This document shows, one piece after another, positions 25,412 to 58,616 of a stretch of 64,000 nt of DNA. The stretch lies in sequence record NC_049851.1. The stretch is one strand, 5' to 3'. The notes beneath the pieces were generated by a model. It was not told the origin of the DNA and ran no database searches. It saw only the letters and a list, made by a program, of their open reading frames with translations. The position numbers and the translations under genes are program-made. Positions within the stretch are counted from its first letter, which is position 1. Each line of letters opens with the position of its first letter.

Positions 25412-26530
25412 TTACTCGCCCGTCTTGAGCAAATACGAATTCGAAATCGCCTTAAAGCTGAAACCCGACTCCGCATGCTTGTAAACCTTGCCTTCAGCGG
25501 GCTTGCCGTTGATGCCCTTGTGCTCGGCGCGTGCCAGCAGATCGGCCTTCGTCTTCGCGATGTCGTACAGGCGGAAGTGGCCACCGACCGGAACGTGCTT
25601 GATGCCGAGTTCCTGAGCCAGATGCTCGACCTGAACCGGCGTCAGGTATTCCTGCGCGTCAATGTCCCACACGTCGTACAGGAAGAACGCGTGCGTGTCT
25701 GCCGGGAAGCCTTCGAAGTTCGACTGGATCGACGAACCGCACATTTCACCTTGAAGCGCGAGCGAGCGGCCGAGTGCTGCCGTCTTCTCCAGAAGTTGCT
25801 CCTGACGCGCAATGCGCCAGAACATGTTGTCTTCGGTCTCGACGAGATCGAGGTTGCGCGAGCACACGCTTTGCACGAGTTCCGGAAGCGCACCGTTTTC
25901 GTCAGCCTTTGCAAAACCAGCAAAGTACGGGCTGCTCGGAAGCAGAGTGTACGCGGTCAGCGACGAGCCGTCCATCTTCGTCGTTTCTTGGAAGACCTCT
26001 TCGCCCCACTTCTCGAACAGATCGCGGATGTTCTGCACGCGCTCCTGATCGGTCTTCGGGATGAAGTGCGGGAAGTTGCCGCGTGCGGTGCCGCGCAGGT
26101 TCGCGGGCAGCACCTTTTCCCACTTGACGATGCCCAGCGTTTCCGTCAGATCGACTTCAGCGATCTGCTCGTCGGTCAGGTCGGCCGCGCGATACGTCTT
26201 GTCCTCGACGCTGAAGTCGCTCAGTTCGGGGTACAGCGACAGCGGGAGCAGCAGGCCCTGCGAGAGTTGGCCTTTCAGCTTCATCGACTTGATGCGGGCA
26301 CCGCGCTTGCCCTCGAACGTGATGAAGCGCGGTTCGAGGAACGCATAGCGCTCGTCGTCGGCCGACAGGAACGAGTCGATTTCGAAATAGACGCCGATAT
26401 CGCCCACCTTGAATTCACCCTTCTTGACGACGCATTGCCAGCCGTCGATGAGGGCGAGTTCGATGAGATCGGCACCCGTGATCGGTTCGAGTGCGGTGAC
26501 GCGACGGAACGTTGCGAGTTTGCGAGTCAT
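25412..26530 (-). CDS. ATP-dependent RNA ligase, DRB0094 family
   Basis: RKLAT...I.GAD.IE...IDGWQCVVKKGEFKVGD..VYFEIDSFL; motif I TKMDGSS; QGE; EGKVYK; FKAISN.YLLK. Confidence 0.88.
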   Translation of the reverse strand: MTRKLATFRRVTALEPITGADLIELALIDGWQCVVKKGEFKVGDIGVYFEIDSFLSADDERYAFLEPRFITFEGKRGARIKSMKLKGQLSQGLLLPLSLYPELSDFSVEDKTYRAADLTDEQIAEVDLTETLGIVKWEKVLPANLRGTARGNFPHFIPKTDQERVQNIRDLFEKWGEEVFQETTKMDGSSLTAYTLLPSSPYFAGFAKADENGALPELVQSVCSRNLDLVETEDNMFWRIARQEQLLEKTAALGRSLALQGEMCGSSIQSNFEGFPADTHAFFLYDVWDIDAQEYLTPVQVEHLAQELGIKHVPVGGHFRLYDIAKTKADLLARAEHKGINGKPAEGKVYKHAESGFSFKAISNSYLLKTGE

Positions 26531-26551: not shown

Positions 26552-27250
26552 TTAAACGTTGAATGCGATTTCGTCGGTGCGCTTGCGCCGACGCGTTGCC
26601 TTACCTTCTGCCGGTGCCTCGTCCTTCGTCAGGAACCACTCGGGGACCGCATCGAGCGACGGCGGTTCATACGCTTCGACGACGCTCGACTTCTTGATCA
26701 CCTTGTTCGACGGATCGAACACCAGACCTTGCTCGCGCAGGGACGCGCGTTTCTGCTTCCACTGCGAGAACGTGAGCAGCGAACCCGATTCGATGGACTC
26801 GGGGGGCATGTACATCGTGAACGACTTGCCGCGCTGCTGGCGGTCGGGGGAGCCGATCAGAATAACCTGCCCCTTCGACGTATAGCCCGCGACGTAGCCC
26901 ACCAGATAATTCGACACGTACTCGGTGCCGACGCAGAAGTAGAACTTCTGGCCCGGTTCGTACTGCTTTTTCTTCTGACGCAGGAGCGCGGTCGCGATCC
27001 GGCGTTGCTTCGGATTCCAGTTTCGGAACAACGTCACGAATTGCACGAACTGATCCGAGTTACCGCAGAGTTGCGTGGCGTCAGGCGTGTAGCAGGACGG
27101 GGCCACGGCCCCGGCCTTAATGCCTTCATCCTTGCAGATTTTCTCGTGGTCACTGTGGCGGTGTGCTTCCCAATGGAGGCATTCGCCACAGCGATAGCTG
27201 TCGGTCAACGCCTTGGGGAGCGCGGAAGTCAGCGAGTCTTTCTTTTGCAC
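26552..27250 (-). CDS. hypothetical protein with N-terminal Cys cluster
   Basis: CGECLHW..C..C; promoter TTGACA-17-TAGACT at 27308-27336. Confidence 0.65.
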   Translation of the reverse strand: MQKKDSLTSALPKALTDSYRCGECLHWEAHRHSDHEKICKDEGIKAGAVAPSCYTPDATQLCGNSDQFVQFVTLFRNWNPKQRRIATALLRQKKKQYEPGQKFYFCVGTEYVSNYLVGYVAGYTSKGQVILIGSPDRQQRGKSFTMYMPPESIESGSLLTFSQWKQKRASLREQGLVFDPSNKVIKKSSVVEAYEPPSLDAVPEWFLTKDEAPAEGKATRRRKRTDEIAFNV

Positions 27251-27332: not shown

Positions 27333-27665
27333 TCAAGCACCAACGATACGAGAGGTCGGGACTTTGATGCCCGTGGTTTTCGTCACGTAGCTCGCGATCA
27401 GGTCTTCCGGGCACTGGCGCACGAACAACACCATGTCGTGCGGCATCGGGAACTCGTCGAGAGCGCCGAACACCTTGTGGTTCGAGAGGTACGGCGTGAG
27501 CATGACGCCGGTAGCGCCGTTGGGGCCCACGCCCGGGACCGCATGAAGTTCGAACGGCTTGTCGAGGCCGAGTTGCTTGTCGTTCTCGCCTGCGTAGCGT
27601 GCGATCACGGTCTGGCCGTTCTTGAGGTGGACCGCGATCACGGGCTGTTTCTGTGCTTCACTCAT
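27333..27665 (-). CDS. Sm/Hfq-like fold protein (putative)
   Basis: VIAVHLKNGQTVIARY......L.L.KP pattern. Confidence 0.45.
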   Translation of the reverse strand: MSEAQKQPVIAVHLKNGQTVIARYAGENDKQLGLDKPFELHAVPGVGPNGATGVMLTPYLSNHKVFGALDEFPMPHDMVLFVRQCPEDLIASYVTKTTGIKVPTSRIVGA

Positions 27666-28131
27666 TACCGAAATTTCTCCTATACATGTTTTCTAGTGCG
27701 AGATAGAGGATGGATTCACGCGACTTGCACTTGGGGTACACCTTCTTGAGCCTGTCGACCATCGCCTTCTGCTTACCGGTCAGTCGCAACATCACGAGCG
27801 CCGGTTTATTCGGATCGCCCTTTGTCGCGGCCCACGCATTGTACACGACGGTCGCAAGTTCGAGCAATCTAGTTGCAGCCTTAGCAGGTTCCCCCTTCAG
27901 CAAATCGAAGTGCGGTTTGCCGGACTGGAGACGCAGTGCGATAGCGTGCACACGGTTGTGGTGGTCAGCGCAAAGGGTGACGGTGGGGCCGTCGGTGCCA
28001 CCGAAGTTACGGGGCACCACGTGATGCACTTCCCGGGATGCGGGTCCGGGCGGGACCGAATCCGTAAATCGCTGCTCGCACACATAGCAGTGCGGAAGGA
28101 TCACGTGTTTGACTTGTTGGTCAGCCGCCAT
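27658..28131 (-). CDS. HNH endonuclease with possible C-terminal ribbon-helix-helix
   Basis: CYVC..EVHHVVPRNFGGTDGPTVTLCADHHNRVH. Confidence 0.8.
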   Translation of the reverse strand: MAADQQVKHVILPHCYVCEQRFTDSVPPGPASREVHHVVPRNFGGTDGPTVTLCADHHNRVHAIALRLQSGKPHFDLLKGEPAKAATRLLELATVVYNAWAATKGDPNKPALVMLRLTGKQKAMVDRLKKVYPKCKSRESILYLALENMYRRNFGNE

Positions 28132-28630
28132 AGGACTTGGCGGTGTCTTGGTAATAGTCCGAGGACGGAGCATACCGGTAGTCGCGCGTAAGCTGCACTT
28201 CGTGGCTGAACGTGAGCATGCGACGGTCGATAGTGCCAAGCACGTGCGTGATGCTGTTGACGAACGTGCGGACGTGGCGCTTGAGCGGGACCATATGCGG
28301 CACCAGCACCATGTGCGGGAAGTAGAGATTCCCGTAGAACTCGTTCGGAGCCTCTTCGCGCAGGTCTTGAGCCCGAGTCAGCAGATCATCGCTGGACAGC
28401 GGCAGGATCAGCGACGAGTCACCGAGGGCCGTGTCGTACCAGATGCCCATATAGCCGGGCCGTGCACGATACACTGCACCCGTGTCGTCGAGCTTCATTT
28501 CGGTCTCGGAGATATTGAGCGAGACATAGGCCGCATCGAAGTTCACCTCGAACGGGCAACCGTTGAACACGGTGCGCAAGTAGTCCAGAGTTTCGTTCGT
28601 GGGAAGGGCCATCGTTTCGTACAGTTTCAT
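28121..28630 (-). CDS. 2H phosphoesterase-fold protein, Acb1/T4 57B-like, with degenerate catalytic motifs
   Basis: ETLDYL, GYMGIW, SSLILPLSS..L..R, YFPHMVL line up with Acb1 segments recalled from memory. Confidence 0.55.
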   Translation of the reverse strand: MKLYETMALPTNETLDYLRTVFNGCPFEVNFDAAYVSLNISETEMKLDDTGAVYRARPGYMGIWYDTALGDSSLILPLSSDDLLTRAQDLREEAPNEFYGNLYFPHMVLVPHMVPLKRHVRTFVNSITHVLGTIDRRMLTFSHEVQLTRDYRYAPSSDYYQDTAKSYGG

Positions 28631-28640
28631 TCATTCACCT

Positions 28641-29621
28641 TTAACAGAAGCCCCAGTTACGCAGTTGCAGACTGCGACCGGAGAAAGCGGACGCGAAATC
28701 GTCCAGTTCAGACTCACGCATGATCCAGTACCACGAGGCACCAGCGTGCGGCATGGGACGCGAAGTCACGGTCGCGTAGCGCTGTTTCGTTTCCTTGCGG
28801 ATTCGCTTGAGCACTCCATCGACAGTGAGGTTCGATTTCGGGTTGATGCTGATCAGAACCTGATCGCGCAGCACCACGTAGCCACCCAGACTGTCGAACT
28901 TGAACCCCCGGGCACGCAGTATCCGGTCGTCCATGATCGTAGCCGGAACGGGCACCACGGAAGTGCGGCCCATAGTGAACGCGTGATCCGGATTGCACTT
29001 GGGCAATGAGTCACGTGCCCCAGTGACCGAGTTTATCACGTCCCCCAGATTGGAGGCAAATACAGGGTCTTTCAACTCGGACTCGGACAGGCGATCACCA
29101 GGGCCGTCATCGCGGTCACCGGATAGCAGCAGACTCTGTTCTTGCAGACGGGCAACCGACGCGCGGTACAGGTCTTCGAGCAGAGAACGCCATTTGCTGA
29201 TGGCGGACAAATCGACAGAACTTTCGTTCAATTCACCAAGGTAGGCAATTTCGCGAAGGCTTGTCAATTCGTTCTTGACTGCGCGCAGCGCGACGCTGGT
29301 GCCCTGCGGCAGGCCACGTGCACGGAACTCGCGTACGGCCTTCAGCGCGTCGGTCAGGCGCTTCATCTGGCGCTCCTTGCTGACGGAGCCCATGCCCGGA
29401 AGTCGTCGGAACGCAGTATTCGAATCGTCGAGCAGTGCTCGGATGTCGTCCACTCGTTTTTGCAGCCCGTCAATGATCTGGCGGGGCTCCTTACCGTTCT
29501 TCGATCCGAGTTGCAGCATCGGTATCAGCTTACCAAGCTGAGACTGGTTCTTCGCAGTCAGGCCGTTGCGCGCCTGCATGCGGTCGAACGTCGAATCGAC
29601 GACGCGCTGATTGTTTTCCAT
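28641..29621 (-). CDS. hypothetical protein
   Basis: 326-aa ORF. Confidence 0.7.
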   Translation of the reverse strand: MENNQRVVDSTFDRMQARNGLTAKNQSQLGKLIPMLQLGSKNGKEPRQIIDGLQKRVDDIRALLDDSNTAFRRLPGMGSVSKERQMKRLTDALKAVREFRARGLPQGTSVALRAVKNELTSLREIAYLGELNESSVDLSAISKWRSLLEDLYRASVARLQEQSLLLSGDRDDGPGDRLSESELKDPVFASNLGDVINSVTGARDSLPKCNPDHAFTMGRTSVVPVPATIMDDRILRARGFKFDSLGGYVVLRDQVLISINPKSNLTVDGVLKRIRKETKQRYATVTSRPMPHAGASWYWIMRESELDDFASAFSGRSLQLRNWGFC

Positions 29622-29731: not shown

Positions 29732-30202
29732 TTACAGCAGGTCGTACGTTTCGCCCTTCGTTGCTGCGGCCTTCGGAGCCTTCGCTGCCTTTGCCGGTGC
29801 TGCCTTCGGTGCAGCGGCCTTCTTCGCTGCCGGTGCAGCCTTCGCTGCCTTCGGTGCCTTTGCCGGAGCGGCGGCCTTCGCTGCCTTTGCCGGAGCGGCT
29901 GCGACCTTGCGCTTCGATGCCGGAACGTCGGCGTCCGATGCCTTCGCCTTCTTCGCGACCGGAGCGGCCTTCGCTGCCTTTGCCGGTGCTGCCTTCTTGG
30001 CGGCCGGTGCAGCCTTCGTCTTTGCTGCTGCGGCCACGGCCGTCAGCTTCGCGACTTGTGCTTCCAGCTTGGCGATCTGCTTGGCTTGCGCGCCGATGGT
30101 CTTCTCCGATGCTGCTGCGCCCTTTGCTGCGTCCTTCAGGATTGCCGAGACTGCCGGTGCTGCTGCGACCTTCGTTGCTGCTGCCTTTGCGATACGTGCC
30201 AT
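29732..30202 (-). CDS. histone H1-like Lys/Ala/Pro-rich DNA-binding protein
   Basis: Repeats of AAPAKKAA/KAAKAAP; start MARIAKAA at 30202. Confidence 0.8.
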   Translation of the reverse strand: MARIAKAAATKVAAAPAVSAILKDAAKGAAASEKTIGAQAKQIAKLEAQVAKLTAVAAAAKTKAAPAAKKAAPAKAAKAAPVAKKAKASDADVPASKRKVAAAPAKAAKAAAPAKAPKAAKAAPAAKKAAAPKAAPAKAAKAPKAAATKGETYDLL

Positions 30203-53525: not shown

Positions 53526-53602
53526 GGGCGGTTAGCTCAGGGGTTAGCAGCGTTCGGCTCATAACCGAGGGGTCGCGGGTTCGAATCCCGCACCGCCCAC
53601 CA
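53526..53602 (+). tRNA. tRNA-CAU (Met, or Ile2 if lysidine-modified)
   Basis: Cloverleaf; TTCGG-CT-CAT-AA-CCGAG; TTCGAAT; encoded CCA. Confidence 0.9.
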
Positions 53603-53658
53603 CACAGAATAGGAGGCAATCATGAGTAGATTCTAGTGAACCAACTGGAGGTGTTCTC

Positions 53659-53946
53659 ATGAAAGCAAAAGCGTTTTACCATCGTGTTTGTAACTACGGC
53701 CCGGGCGGCTACCACTGCCCGTGCTGTGGTCCCGCACCGAGCATGCGTCGTAAGGAGCGTCAGCAACAACGACGCAAGTTCCATCGACTGCTTGACGTTC
53801 TGGACAAGTTTGACACCGAAGTCGAAATCGAATACGACAACCTCGTGCTCAACGATTTCGACGACGAGCGTCACGACTACTACAACGGCTGGGGCGGTGA
53901 TCCCAGCCTGCACGATGAGTGGAAGGATTGGAAGAAGGCAGCTTGA
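53659..53946 (+). CDS. hypothetical protein with CPCC motif
   Basis: RBS GGAGG. Confidence 0.6.
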   Translation: MKAKAFYHRVCNYGPGGYHCPCCGPAPSMRRKERQQQRRKFHRLLDVLDKFDTEVEIEYDNLVLNDFDDERHDYYNGWGGDPSLHDEWKDWKKAA

Positions 53947-54010
53947 CCGTACTGCACCGCAAAGCCTTAGATGCGGTGTGCCGCGAGAACGTGAGCGGTG
54001 CAGTGCACCT

Positions 54011-54096
54011 GCCCGGGTGGCGGAATTGCTAGACGCGACGGACTCAAAATCCGTTGGCCCTAGGCCGTGTGGGTTGGAGTCCCACCCCGGGCACCA
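54011..54096 (+). tRNA. tRNA-Leu(CAA) with C19/G56 elbow
   Basis: ACGGA-CT-CAA-AA-TCCGT, long variable arm, CCA. Confidence 0.9.
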
Positions 54097-54098
54097 TC

Positions 54099-54137
54099 GC
54101 GAGGGTGGCGAAATTGGTAGACGTGGCGAAATTGGTA
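54099..54137 (+). pseudogene. 5' fragment of a tRNA-Leu with a 15-nt direct duplication
   Basis: GCGAGGG-TG-GCGAAATTGGTAGACG; GTGGCGAAATTGGTA at 54105-54119 and 54123-54137. Confidence 0.8.
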
Positions 54138-54177
54138 ATCCCCAATTTTATTTCAGTAACCAACGTGGAGAAGATTC

Positions 54178-54888
54178 ATGCTAGAACTGAAAAACGACAT
54201 GCCGATTTTGGCCAAGAAGTTGTCCGGTGTGTATGGTCACGAGATTCGTATCATCGGGCCGTACGTGGACAAGAGAAACGGGCGTAAGCTCGTGGACATA
54301 AAGGGTGCGCCCCGTTCCTCGGGAATTAACAAAACCGTGCAGCTTGCACGTGCGCGCCTAGAAGTAAAGCTTGGTCGACGCCTTGTCGATGACGAGACTG
54401 TCGACCACAAGAACAACGATTGCACGGATGACCGTCCGAGCAATCTTCAGTTGCTGACGCACGCAGAGAACTCGGCAAAGCAGACGAAGGAAACGCGTAG
54501 TCGCTCGGCTGAAGCGTCTCGCACCGCCGAGGCGCGTTCCGCTAACAGCAAACGCAATACAGGTGAGAAGAATCAAGCTGCCGTCCTTACCGATACTGAA
54601 GTGAAAAGGTTTCGCACACTTTTCAGTAAGGGTAAAATGACGGTCAAGCAAATCGAAGATGCGTCGGAGTTGACAAATCGTTCGGTTCGTAATATGCTTG
54701 ACGGCCTGTCGTACAAAACGGCAGGCGGACCGCTCCGCATAGCAGGCTCTGTTGGTCGCGCATCCTCGTTGTCAGAGAAGCACAGGCAGTACATAGCGAA
54801 TCACGCAGAACTGTCAGCCGCGCAGATTGCAGAAGAACTTGACGTGAGTAGGTATGCAGTGATACGATACCGACGCACGCTTAACTAA
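54178..54888 (+). mobile_element. HNH homing endonuclease
   Basis: LARARLEVKLGR.L...ETVDHKNND.TDDRPSNLQLLT.AEN plus a C-terminal HTH-like region. Confidence 0.85.
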
Positions 54889-54889
54889 C

Positions 54890-54976
54890 GGGAGTGTGCT
54901 GGAATTGGTAGACGGAACGGATTTAGATTCCGTAGGCCGCAAGGTCGTGTGGGTTCGAATCCCATCACTCCCACCA
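54890..54976 (+). tRNA. tRNA-Leu(TAG)
   Basis: ACGGA-TT-TAG-AT-TCCGT, variable arm, CCA. Confidence 0.92.
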
Positions 54977-55006
54977 CTACACGAAATTTTAGTTAAAGGT
55001 ATTTAA

Positions 55007-55246
55007 GTGCCGCCAAGCATCGAACAGGTAAAACTTATACTCAGATCAGCAGCATTGTCTCCGAGCAGCAGTCAGTTGTCTATTTCTGGCTTTGACGATA
55101 TCATGAAGGCAGCAGAGGAAGCCTATTGTGGAGATAGCCGAGCCATGCTCACAAACGTCCGGGAAATTGCCTTGCAGTTTCCGGACAATACGATGATGAT
55201 GACGATTTTGGCGCTGTATTCTGAATCCATGCTGAGTATGCATTAA
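55007..55246 (+). CDS. hypothetical protein (79 aa)
   Basis: GTG-start ORF, lower GC than the flanks. Confidence 0.45.
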   Translation: MPPSIEQVKLILRSAALSPSSSQLSISGFDDIMKAAEEAYCGDSRAMLTNVREIALQFPDNTMMMTILALYSESMLSMH

Positions 55247-55260
55247 GCGCAATCCCCACA

Positions 55261-55310
55261 GTCCTGCCGGTCGAAAGGCCGTGAGGGTTCGAATCCCTTT
55301 CCTCGCACCA
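55261..55310 (+). pseudogene. 3' fragment of a tRNA-Leu
   Basis: GT-CCTGC-C-GGTC-GAAA-GGCC-GT-GAGGG-TTCGAAT-CCCTT-TCCTCGC-ACCA; TCCTCGC pairs with GCGAGGG at 54099. Confidence 0.85.
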
Positions 55311-55404
55311 CTTTGGATTGTAGGCGTAAATCGAGCGGGACTTCCCCACCCACTCGATTAGGTATGGTACACCTTATAGACCGTCGCCTACAATCCAAAG
55401 TGGT
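55307..55404 (+). ncRNA. unknown structured RNA, 20-bp perfect closing stem
   Basis: ACCACTTTGGATTGTAGGCG (55307-55326) / CGCCTACAATCCAAAGTGGT (55385-55404), internal hairpin AATCGAG/CTCGATT. Confidence 0.55.
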
Positions 55405-55477
55405 TGTGGTAAAGATGTAGTGTGCTTTGCCTTTGAAGCGCGGGCGCTGTGGTTCTCAGGCCACGACAGCGCCCAAC

Positions 55478-55553
55478 GCCGGTTTAGCTCAGTTGGTAGA
55501 GCAGCGCCCTTGTAAAGCGCAGGTCACGGGTTCGAGCCCTGTAACCGGCACCA
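55478..55553 (+). tRNA. tRNA-Thr(TGT)
   Basis: GCGCC-CT-TGT-AA-AGCGC; CCA. Confidence 0.92.
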
Positions 55554-55574
55554 CTAAACAATAACAACGAGGTT

Positions 55575-56138
55575 GTGATGAATACGCATGAGGCTTACGA
55601 GATCGTCGATAGACTGACGCCGGTATCGGTCAGGAACCTCGAAGACGCGTACGTACGGTTCATGGAAATGGCGCTTCTGGTCGATCCACACCCGGAGACT
55701 GAAGACCGGGCCACACGGGATCGTGAGACATACACTGAATTCCTGCTACCGCCCGACGAGAACGGCAATCCCGTGATTTCGGTCCCGGGCATGCACCAGT
55801 TTCTGTCCAAGATCACGGGCCATCCACTACAAACCTGCGTAGCCTTCGACTATGTTGACTTCCATCGCGTGCACGGCACGACGGTAGAGGACGCGGAACT
55901 CGCTGGCTACGTTTAAGGACGGACCATGGAAGAAGACGCATACAGGTTCAGTGTGGCAGCGCTCAAAAGCGAGTACGACGCTGAACTGCTCGAACTGCGC
56001 AAGACAGTGCTTGAAGGTCGCGGTGACGTTGCTGGGTTTATCAAACTCAAGGAGTCGCTTGACTCAAGGCTGAAGGACCGCGTTAGCGCGGTTACTGGCG
56101 CACGCAGTCAAACACAGAACAAGTTGCTGTACAACTGA
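55575..56138 (+). other. hypothetical ORFs 55575-55916 and 55926-56138
   Basis: ORF track, RBSs. Confidence 0.6.
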
Positions 56139-56144
56139 ACAAGA

Positions 56145-56221
56145 CTCCGCTTAGCTCAGCCCGGTAGAGTACGTGATTTGGGATCACGGGGTCGCAGGTT
56201 CAAATCCTGTAGCGGAGACCA
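56145..56221 (+). tRNA. tRNA-Pro(TGG)
   Basis: CGTGA-TT-TGG-GA-TCACG; C1:G72, A73, CCA. Confidence 0.92.
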
Positions 56222-56239
56222 CACAACATAGGAGGTGTC

Positions 56240-57512
56240 TTGGAAACCACTTACGACTACAGCCTTACGTTCGACCTGACTGACATCATCGTGTTCGTTC
56301 TGATCGCGATCATGATCAAGATGGTCATCGACATCGTGCGTGAGCGCATGCGAATACGCAGGCTCCGACGCGACATGGGGGCAAACGGCAATCTTCCGTG
56401 CATCACGATCTCGGGTAACGACGATGTGTCGATCTCGGGTCTTGTGTACGAAGGGCGGCCCATCCCCTCGGTCGATATCAAGAACAAAGCGCTGTTCGTC
56501 GACGGTCAGTTCAAGCGCCGCCTCGCCCGCAACAGCCGTGTCTACAACCGTGGCATCGGAATCTTCGCGGACGGCAAGTACATGGGGTAATACCATGCGC
56601 AGTATCTTTCACATTTCGGTCGGCTCCGATAACTGGAACCCGACCGAGGACGAACTTGCGGGCATCGTCCGCAAGTTCAAAGAACTGGAAGCAAAGCAGG
56701 GTCAGCGTCAACAGCTTCCCGATACCCGCAAGATCATCCACATCAGTGTGGGTGCTGAGGATTGGACGCCTACCGCAGACGAACTGTTGGCCATCGTCAA
56801 TCAGTTCCAGTATGCAGACCTCGATCCGCTCGGTGGGTGGATTGCGACGCGTCACGGTATCAAAGTCACTGACATCGAGACCGCCGCACAGCCCACGCTG
56901 GTGGTGAACGGCACGACCCACGAAAGCGAGGCTCGTGCTTCGCTACGTCAGGACTCCATCGACCGGCTTGAGGCCATCCGCGAAAACCTGCGTACGTTCA
57001 AGCTGAGCACGCTCGATGTCGACACACTGATCAATCGGTTGTCGACGTATCAACTTTAACCGAAAAGCTTAGGACAACAAATGAAACAACTCAACACGCA
57101 ACGCCGCTTCGAATGCCTGACACCGGAAGGTACATGGGTCTCCGTGCACTGGGAGCAACTGGAACCGGGCGACATGATCCGCCTCCTGCCCGCTGTCGGC
57201 ATCACCGAGGACGTTCCGCCGACCGACGTATTCGTCGTCATGGACACGCCTACCGTGAACGTGCGTTCGGTGAACGAAATCCGTGCCGAACAAGCAGCCG
57301 CAGCGCAGCGTGAAGCGCTGGCCAACACGGAAGGTGTCGATGCTATCCAAGCAGCGCAGCGCGATATCGACGCAGCCGTCGAGCAGATGAAGCCGGTAAC
57401 AGAGGCCGTGGCAAAGGTGGCGCACGCAGTAAAGGCCAAGAAGACGCCGAGCCCGAAGGTTCCGGCACCGGCACGCAAGCCGCGCACGCGCAAGGTCGCG
57501 ACGCCGAAGTAA
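56240..57512 (+). other. hypothetical ORFs 56240-56590 (N-terminal TM), 56595-57059 (internal repeat), 57081-57512 (basic tail)
   Basis: ORF track, RBSs. Confidence 0.6.
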
Positions 57513-57624
57513 TGGCCGTGTAGTAAATAGGTTGGGTGAGCGCGGAAACGCAATCCCCAATTTGAGTTGTACAGAAAACTAGTGCTGGTTGCCGGATGCA
57601 GTTGTTACCCGGAACAGCACACGC

Positions 57625-57714
57625 GGATGGGTGCCCGAGTGGCTAAAGGGGGCAGACTGTAAATCTGCCGGGCCTCAGTGTCCTACGTTGGTTCGAATCC
57701 AACCTCATCCACCA
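57625..57714 (+). tRNA. tRNA-Tyr(GTA)
   Basis: GCAGA-CT-GTA-AA-TCTGC, long variable arm, CCA. Confidence 0.92.
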
Positions 57715-57767
57715 GAACATAAGCAGGAGCCCTGAGCATCAGGGCATCAGGGCAACAAGGAAAAGCA

Positions 57768-58049
57768 ATGCCGATTAAGCCGCTGTATGACAAGGTGGTG
57801 GTGCGTACCACCGACACAGACCGTACGACTGTAGGGGGCATCGTGATCCCCGCTGCTTCGCTCAAGGCGAATCAGGCTGTCGTGGTCGCTGTCGGTGACG
57901 GCCACCTTATGCAAGACGGTACGCTTCGACCGCTGTCCGTGAAGGCAGGCGACGTTGTGTACCTCTCGCATGAAGGCTCCGAGATCGAAGTCAACGGTGA
58001 AAAGCTTCGCGTCTTCATCGAAGGCGATCTGATAGGAGTCCTCAACTAA
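57768..58049 (+). CDS. groES: co-chaperonin GroES
   Basis: IKPLYDKVVV, GGIVIP, VVAVGDG, VKAGDVV, GSEIEVNGE. Confidence 0.92.
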   Translation: MPIKPLYDKVVVRTTDTDRTTVGGIVIPAASLKANQAVVVAVGDGHLMQDGTLRPLSVKAGDVVYLSHEGSEIEVNGEKLRVFIEGDLIGVLN

Positions 58050-58058
58050 GCAGTACAT

Positions 58059-58135
58059 TCCCCGTGAGCAAGCTAGGCGACTGCACCGGACTGTTAATCC
58101 GGCATTGCGTGGTTCGAATCCACGACGGGGAGCCA
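58059..58135 (+). tRNA. tRNA-Asn(GTT)
   Basis: CCGGA-CT-GTT-AA-TCCGG; CCA. Confidence 0.92.
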
Positions 58136-58139
58136 ATCA

Positions 58140-58242
58140 TGAATAGGTCATGAGTAAGGCAGATCACTCAATCCGGAAACTCAAAAGGTAATCCGGGTAG
58201 CAATGAGCATCCTGTAAGCCGAGACGATGATTGACTTATTCA
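58140..58242 (+). ncRNA. unknown structured spacer RNA
   Basis: Closing stem TGAATAGGTCA/TGACTTATTCA with internal hairpins TGAGT/ACTCA and CCGGA/TCCGG. Confidence 0.45.
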
Positions 58243-58244
58243 GA

Positions 58245-58320
58245 GCGCGGGTAGCTCAGTTGGTAGAGCACCGGACTGAAAATCCGGGTGTCGCTGGTTC
58301 GAGTCCAGCCCTGCGCACCA
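58245..58320 (+). tRNA. tRNA-Phe(GAA)
   Basis: CCGGA-CT-GAA-AA-TCCGG; CCA. Confidence 0.93.
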
Positions 58321-58322
58321 GC

Positions 58323-58438
58323 GTTGTGATCGAGTGAAAATCGTAGGAAGGGGCCGATTACCCTGACCGCAATCTGTAGGTGGACCGGCTGGCCCTCATC
58401 CTGCTAGTGTAGATTTTTCCCATGTGGTTTCGATCAAC
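58323..58438 (+). ncRNA. unknown rod-like RNA
   Basis: Nested stems TGATCGA/TCGATCA, GAAAATC/GATTTT, GTAGGA/TCCTGC, GGGGCC/GGCCCT separated by bulges. Confidence 0.45.
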
Positions 58439-58539
58439 TAATCATTGTGTGGTTGTAGCGCACTAAATCAGACGGCCGGGCTCCGGAGCCCGCGTACCAT
58501 ACCACCCCGGATGGAAACCGTTGAATATTCCGGGTCGAT

Positions 58540-58616
58540 AGGGGTGTAGCCAAGTTGGTTAAGGCAACGGATTTTGATTCCGTCATGCGTAGGTTCGAAT
58601 CCTACCGCCCCTTCCA
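58540..58616 (+). tRNA. tRNA-Gln(TTG)
   Basis: ACGGA-TT-TTG-AT-TCCGT; discriminator T; CCA. Confidence 0.9.

Follow-up and report, generated by a model that had tools for sequence, protein, structure and literature searches.

Acb1-type enzymes are the model for viral destruction of cyclic-nucleotide immune signals. Two proteins of the two-histidine (2H) fold provide the reference points used here: T4 Acb1 (57B), with a catalytic tetrad of H44, T46, H113 and T115, and the phosphodiesterase (PDE) PDE-9 of phage BCSR5 (PDB entries 9Q2G and 9Q2Y), in which the equivalent positions in 9Q2G are H50/T52 and H123/T125. In PDE-9, H50 and H123 are the catalytic histidines, and an H50A variant provided the apo form (Doherty et al., bioRxiv 10.1101/2025.08.21.671373); for T4 Acb1, the published study (PMC9117128) describes H44A as catalytically inactive, such that loss of the motif-1 histidine alone abolishes activity. 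T4 also combines its Acb1 enzyme with two ‘sponges’, Acb2 and Sequestin (PMC12265669). Here we describe gp164, the product of a gene at 28121..28630 on the minus strand of a 64,000-nucleotide stretch (‘the window’) of the 262.7 kb genome of the jumbo phage Burkholderia phage BcepSauron (NC_049851.1; window position = record position - 62000). Judged from its sequence, gp164 is a conserved pseudoenzyme derived from Acb1, and not a decaying only copy.

The gene is annotated as H1O17_gp164 (YP_009904542.1), a hypothetical protein of 169 amino acids, and its assignment as an Acb1-family 2H-fold protein with a degenerate catalytic tetrad draws on the open reading frame, profile matches, an AlphaFold2 (AF2) model and Foldseek. 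The reading frame proposed in an earlier note on this DNA is real: it is full-length, without internal stops, and the peptides quoted there (ETLDYL, GYMGIW, SSLILPLSSDDL..R and YFPHMVL) are all found in its translation; the T4 letters that the note set alongside them were not used in our analysis. Between BcepSauron and phage Saruman the gene differs at 7 nucleotides, giving 6 synonymous changes and 1 non-synonymous change, and purifying selection acts on it.

Taken singly, the gp164 sequence gives no match in Pfam, PHROGs or NCBIfam, and only chance antibody matches in the PDB; it falls below the gathering score of the Pfam Acb1 family (PF23474), with no Pfam match even at E <= 10, and a word-indexed protein search returned solely the Saruman orthologue, at 99% identity. 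The likeness of gp164 to Acb1 exceeds chance at the profile and structure level only. Searching with tblastn recovered homologues in phiRSL1 (43% identity), BCSR5 (36%) and Motura (31%), and only one of the four closest relatives gives a weak match to PF23474 (E 0.17). A full HMMER scan then defined a family of 78 clusters at E <= 0.001, of which 47 also pass E <= 1e-10, with clusters set at 50% identity; 71 representatives make up the main alignment, and a locus search with the 4-sequence alignment contributed one further locus.

At the level of profiles, the relationship to Acb1 is clear. A profile of the four phage proteins matches 9Q2G (‘Anti-CBASS protein Acb1’) with an E-value of 5e-5, and the 71-sequence profile does so at 9e-15 whilst also finding the Acb1 of Erwinia phage FBB1 (7T26, E 1.5e-5); 21 of the 71 family members match PF23474 directly. 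With hhalign, comparison to an alignment of PDE-9-type and T4-type 57B proteins returned 98.75% at E 1.4e-16 over 132 columns. The AF2 model of gp164, built from the 71-sequence alignment, has a predicted local distance difference test (pLDDT) score of 96.1 and a predicted template-modelling (pTM) score of 0.89. In Foldseek, the best matches to the model are 9Q2Y and 9Q2G (E 1e-8, TM-score 0.73-0.78), followed by FBB1 Acb1 (7T27/7T26; E 3e-6 to 7T27), with the wider 2H superfamily lower down: CPDase, Usb1, LigT, AKAP18 and the poxvirus cyclic GMP-AMP (cGAMP) PDE. A search of BFVD with the same model ranks the RSL1 and Motura orthologues best, then proteins named as Acb1 (TM-score 0.65-0.80). 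Profile matches, hhalign, BFVD and Foldseek thus agree with the earlier note in its description of an Acb1-like 2H protein, and the structure predicted here speaks against that note's own proviso that the fold might be something other than 2H. We regard homology to Acb1 and the 2H enzyme PDE-9 as established, with a predicted compact 2H fold retained.

What fails in gp164 is the catalytic tetrad. Motif alignments from the hidden Markov model search (to PDB 9Q2G) and from hhalign agree in setting the motif 1 remnant, Y35-V36-S37 (codons TAT GTC TCG, 28520..28528, minus strand), against H50-V-T52 of 9Q2G, and the motif 2 remnant, H106-M107-V108 (CAC ATG GTG, 28307..28315, minus strand), against H123-L-T125; the damage to both HxT motifs thus lies exactly where the earlier note had placed it, at YVS and HMV. 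This leaves gp164 with half of its tetrad, S37 and H106, the other two positions having changed from His to Tyr and from Thr to Val. The position of H106 is not kept in the closest relatives, where it is occupied by F, Y and Y in RSL1, BCSR5 and Motura, the full motif pairs reading F-V-E/F-L-V, Y-C-A/Y-M-V and R-V-T/Y-M-K, respectively. It is very probable that gp164 is a non-canonical, catalytically impaired relative of Acb1; as the feature that defines the Acb1 family catalytically fails, we place gp164 in an Acb1-derived pseudoenzyme family and do not file it as an Acb1 enzyme. By analogy with H44A and H50A, canonical cleavage of cyclic oligonucleotides by gp164 would not be expected.

The erosion is a solid observation, and it is family-wide. 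Only 6 of the 71 representatives carry a full HxT/S-HxT/S tetrad, leaving 65 without it; both catalytic histidines are present in 8, the motif-1 position is His in 15 and the motif-2 position in 33, and the motif-2 T/S is retained in 17. Counting tetrad residues kept in the alignment of 71, none, one, two, three and four are found in 22, 23, 20, 0 and 6 members, respectively. It may be observed in passing that a state with three residues kept and one lost does not occur among the representatives. The tetrad positions show ordinary entropy in the 65 eroded members, between the 26th and 82nd percentile, and the inward-facing alternate residues of the motif strands remain hydrophobic. A quick distance tree is star-like, with partial tetrad states widely scattered; this suggests that the tetrad was eroded repeatedly rather than in a single event.

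Other parts of the protein are well kept, with length and secondary structure conserved across the 78 clusters at 50% identity or less. Conservation in the eroded members, for residues that are strongly kept in the intact members as well, reaches 89% at P10, 82% at T14, 91% at Y54, 86% at Y65, 74% at D66, 75% at S80, 82% at R86, 88% at P105, 89% at R/K121, 82% at S126, 94% at F141 and 92% at E144, whilst W64 is conserved in 62% (aromatic in 85%) and Y103 is aromatic in 86%; P10, Y54, F141 and E144 are near-invariant, and S80, R86, D66, Y54 and E144 form a polar set common to eroded and intact members. T4 numbering was carried over by way of a 152-residue T4-like 57B orthologue from Enterobacter phage Entb_43, which reproduces the published H44, T46, W74, F107, H113, T115, E141 and W147. 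On this basis the base-stacking W74 of T4 aligns with W64 and F107 with Y99/F98, these positions being aromatic in 82-85% of the family. The AF2 model and the alignment also define a family-specific C-terminal extension, with a predicted helix at 157-168 and, at position 159, an aromatic residue that is conserved.

BcepSauron, BCSR5 and Motura each encode an additional, intact Acb1. In BcepSauron this is gp269, which lies outside the window (NC_049851.1 167957-168469; L012:3989-4501), adjoins tail genes, carries H-V-T and H-L-T motifs, is an orthologue of PDE-9 (41% identical) and matches around 1,380 phage records, mostly of T4-like phages; its annotation, as ‘RNA ligase’ in RefSeq and ‘prohead protease’ in GenBank, looks wrong. 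The intact copy of Motura is gp183, and that of BCSR5 is QRE00328.1, which sits beside a tail-fibre gene and has the sequence of the 9Q2G chain. Doherty et al. list QRE00328.1 as 2H PDE 9 in their supplement and, of 84 structural matches, retained the 75 with ‘intact catalytic histidines’, surveys of viral 2H phosphodiesterases having kept such matches only; the text supplementary files of that work do not contain the eroded BCSR5 copy, QRE00122 (bioRxiv 10.1101/2025.08.21.671373). For RSL1, no intact paralogue was present among the matches listed, no scan of the RSL1 genome having been made.

PDE-9 is the best profile and structural match of gp164, at 22-23% identity, and the two proteins, both from the RSL1-like jumbo phage group, share a compact 2H core. 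They differ in that PDE-9 has H50/T52 and H123/T125 and cleaves 3'3'-cGAMP, whereas gp164 has Y/S and H/V at these positions; the 15-residue lid at the N terminus of PDE-9 has no equivalent in gp164, whilst gp164 has a C-terminal extension of about 25 residues, predicted to end in a helix, that is missing from PDE-9; and the PDE-9 gene adjoins tail genes, whereas gp164 sits in a topoisomerase block between gp165 and an HNH gene. With Acb1 more broadly (T4 57B; Erwinia phage FBB1, 7T26/7T27; PF23474), gp164 shares the order of conserved segments, as the earlier note had proposed, together with the aromatics at the W74/F107 positions and an S-x5-R motif after the fifth strand. The T4-type proteins are shorter after motif 2 and close a C-terminal lid (residues 145-152), the key residues of which could not be placed in gp164, and by comparison with Acb1 the gp164 tetrad is incomplete and its score below every Pfam threshold. 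In the searchable literature, with subscription journals outside its coverage, we found no description of catalytically degenerate Acb1 relatives.

Given this pattern, we tentatively favour, at somewhat less than even chances, a binding-only role for gp164, which would complement gp269 as a sponge or sensor. Loss of the motif-1 histidine and of the motif-2 threonine would abolish canonical metal-independent two-histidine cleavage, because 2H catalysis needs both histidines, and a nucleotide-type ligand might instead be held, uncut, in the old cleft. In this way gp164 could serve as a stoichiometric sponge or sensor for a cyclic-oligonucleotide immune signal or for a 2',3'-cyclic-phosphate nucleotide, complementing the enzyme gp269 much as T4 pairs its Acb1 enzyme with the Acb2 sponge. 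The putative stacking positions and the Ser/Arg pair are kept while the catalytic floor drifts, which makes ligand binding without cutting the most likely outcome. The mode proposed is that of the viral sponges Acb2, Acb4, Tad1, Tad2 and Sequestin, which bind without cleaving and with a degrading enzyme co-resident, although their folds are unrelated to that of gp164; no sponge derived from the degrading enzyme itself is described in the searchable literature. A precedent for a 2H domain as a nucleotide binder is found among the Foldseek matches in the central domain of AKAP18 (AKAP7; 2VFK and 2VFY), an adenosine monophosphate (AMP)-binding module, seen with AMP in PDB 2VFK, that is not a known enzyme. 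It is a very distant parallel, at a TM-score of ~0.5 and 8-9% identity, and AKAP18 is a eukaryotic scaffold protein. The AKAP18 central domain keeps its HxT motifs.

Several points weigh against binding without cleavage. Position 37, that of the motif-1 threonine, is most often Glu (29 of 71), which should repel phosphate and, judging from the alignment, is hard to square with a phosphate held in the ancestral way; the cleft floor as a whole is variable, without a new conserved set of residues. The lid residues Y12 and W147 and the adenine-reading E141 of T4 Acb1 could not be mapped onto gp164, the terminal segments aligning unreliably, and the N-terminal lid of PDE-9 has no counterpart, as the alignment begins at chain residue 20 of PDE-9 against residue 6 of gp164; the ‘cleft-wall’ positions were themselves inferred from the alignment and not from model coordinates. 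Sponges such as Acb2 are usually oligomers with pockets at their interfaces, and inactive T4 Acb1 mutants feature in the assays of PMC9117128 as negative controls only. Finally, constant coupling to an HNH nuclease gene suggests another partnership.

This last point underlies a second reading, the strongest rival, which we consider doubtful on balance but nearly as likely as the first: that gp164, instead of acting as a sponge, belongs without catalysis of its own, as a subunit or regulator, to a complex with the HNH protein gp163 and with gp165 that processes nucleic acids, its 2H scaffold serving as a nucleic-acid-end or protein-binding module in a DNA-metabolism block beside topoisomerase II. 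The gene is flanked directly upstream by gp165, encoding a conserved 326-residue protein (28641..29621, minus strand), and downstream by gp163, an annotated coding sequence for a 157-residue HNH-type nuclease (27658..28131, minus strand; PHROG 144/589, HNH endonuclease). Across ten loci, comprising four cultured phage genera and metagenomic contigs, an HNH gene of the gp163 type lies directly 3' of the Acb1-like gene in all ten, and a gp165-like gene (~320 amino acids) directly 5' in all nine that have upstream flank, an arrangement that extends to distant metagenomic loci and to both tetrad states. Two intact-tetrad genes, P0063 in L005 and P0059 in L018, occupy the same slot of gp165-like, Acb1-like and HNH genes, from which it follows that intact and eroded genes are orthologues; slot genes with intact tetrads are known only from very short contigs, the five examined all being < 2 kb. 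The gene ends are tight, the gp163 start overlapping the gp164 stop by 11 nt and a 10-nt gap separating gp164 from gp165, with comparable overlaps in L005, L014, L017 and L018. A Shine-Dalgarno-like AGGTGA (28635..28640, minus strand) lies 4-5 nt 5' of the gp164 ATG, just past the gp165 stop codon, and scans for promoters and terminators across 25-36 kb gave nothing above chance.

The nature of the partners lends this second reading further weight, within limits. The gp163 family shows invariant CxxC, HH, C, H, H and DPNK residues; this invariance of the catalytic and zinc ligands makes it probable that gp163 acts as a nuclease. The block lies between the type II topoisomerase genes, which are found a few genes upstream where the contig extends far enough, and a protein assigned to a PHROG labelled ‘DNA topoisomerase’, and a variable catalytic floor would suit a function that makes no use of the floor of the cleft. 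Conserved synteny is, however, no proof of a complex by itself: the T4-type 57B slot is also fixed, between genes for a tail-fibre chaperone and a deoxynucleoside monophosphate kinase that are functionally unrelated. The predicted fold of gp165 was uninformative; in Saruman a homing-endonuclease gene separates the Acb1-like and HNH genes without apparent harm, so that strict translational coupling would seem dispensable; and S80, R86 and W64, kept as they are in the intact enzymes, resemble a ligand site and not a new interface. The fixed 57B slot and the Saruman insertion can, though, be read in either direction.

It is improbable, to our minds, that gp164 is still an enzyme, that is, a phosphodiesterase or transferase with residual or altered chemistry that uses H106 and S37 together with the conserved Y35, Y54, D66, E144, R86 and R121, and whose substrate would be a cyclic nucleotide, an RNA end bearing a 2',3'-cyclic phosphate or a derivative of ADP-ribose. 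BcepSauron does retain two of the four tetrad residues, but among the three nearest genera the H106 position reads F, Y and Y and the Y35 position F, Y and R, and 22 of 71 members have none of the four. Several polar residues reach the degree of conservation expected of an active site (Y54 at 91%, E144 at 92%, R86 at 82%), yet these are found in intact members too, where they cannot be the catalytic pair, and no alternative His, Cys or Ser nucleophile is conserved; it is the want of any conserved alternative catalytic residue that makes residual or altered enzymology unlikely. The phage does possess an elaborate RNA-repair set, with an RNA ligase encoded only three genes away, but the ligase is not at this position in RSL1, BCSR5, Motura or the metagenomic loci. 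Also favourable to an enzymatic role is that some 2H groups with intact motifs were inactive on the 18 messengers tested, so that unknown substrates exist within the superfamily.

We give almost no credence to a third alternative, that gp164 is a functionless, decaying duplicate of a phage Acb1 gene, which the degenerate and variable motifs across the family and the intact paralogue in the same genome might invite, but which selection evidence contradicts to the point of near-refutation: the gene is full-length and free of stops, length and secondary structure hold over 78 clusters, the AF2 model is very confident, synonymous changes outnumber non-synonymous by 6 to 1 between Sauron and Saruman, at least four phage genera keep the same syntenic slot, and P10, Y54, F141 and E144 barely vary.

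Some features of the neighbourhood deserve description in their own right. For gp165 we found no Pfam, PHROG, NCBIfam or PDB match, a profile search included, and its AF2 model (pLDDT 78) gave no Foldseek match at E <= 0.001; the protein comprises a helical part at its N terminus and an alpha/beta domain at its C terminus, keeps N117, E118, W297, W299 and G324 invariant, and has 27 relatives, several of them on contigs of 228-249 kb. Its phiRSL1 counterpart (L002:116-1097) is annotated as three open reading frames, ORF001-ORF003, the gene appearing to be split by two breaks, either truly or through a sequencing or annotation artefact where the record begins. Upstream of gp165, gp166 (29732-30202, minus strand) is a 156-residue, Lys/Ala-rich protein of low complexity with histone-H1-like repeats of the AKAAAPAKK type, and its position between the topoisomerase genes and gp165 is conserved. 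We considered gp163 as a ‘homing endonuclease’ and rejected this, the same position being conserved in all loci. The extra gene that Saruman carries between its Acb1-like and HNH genes encodes a 298-residue ‘putative homing endonuclease’ (L022:3000-3896; NC_049850.1 89455-90351); it is absent from BcepSauron, and its start overlaps the Acb1-like stop by 11 nt, just as that of gp163 does in Sauron.

Downstream, gp162 (27333..27665, minus strand) encodes a conserved neighbour of 110 residues that overlaps gp163 by 8 nt and has homologues in RSL1 and L006. The conserved block ends with gp161 (26552..27250, minus strand; 232 residues; PHROG 17701 ‘DNA topoisomerase’, E 2.5e-37), a like gene being found downstream in 7 of the 10 loci; the L005 and L018 contigs end earlier, and L014 gave no match. 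The RNA ligase gp160 (25412-26530, minus strand), with PF21189 OB-fold and PF09414 RNA_ligase domains, belongs to the block in Sauron and Saruman only, and RNA-repair linkage as a conserved feature was rejected on that ground; in RSL1, BCSR5, Motura and the metagenomic loci the gp161-like gene is followed directly by a gene for a protein of ~320 residues, without an RNA ligase. Elsewhere in the window, a cluster of nine tRNA genes (53526-58616, plus strand) specifies Met, Leu-CAA, Leu-TAG, Thr, Pro, Tyr, Asn, Phe and Gln.

Returning to gp164 as a binder that does not cut, we would also raise, as a rather unlikely extension, that the whole Acb1-descended clade switched from cutting immune nucleotides to holding them, and that the bound nucleotide might even control the HNH nuclease, since every member is wired to an HNH nuclease and the 326-residue partner. 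If true, the phage would be exploiting the alarm signal of its host as a cue of its own.

The conserved family is sizeable, with at least 78 clusters (at 50% identity) found in jumbo phages of Burkholderia, Ralstonia and Achromobacter as well as in metagenomes; its members keep the Acb1 fold whilst mostly discarding the tetrad, and do so alongside an intact Acb1 in the same genomes. Should gp164-type proteins bind signals, they would provide the first case of a sponge that arose from the degrading enzyme, and an anti-defence component that activity- and motif-based screens have missed; should they serve the adjacent HNH nuclease, they would show the 2H scaffold put to a new use in the DNA metabolism of phages. 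The natural series of intact and eroded orthologues within one slot is, moreover, a useful system in which to study the origins of pseudoenzymes.

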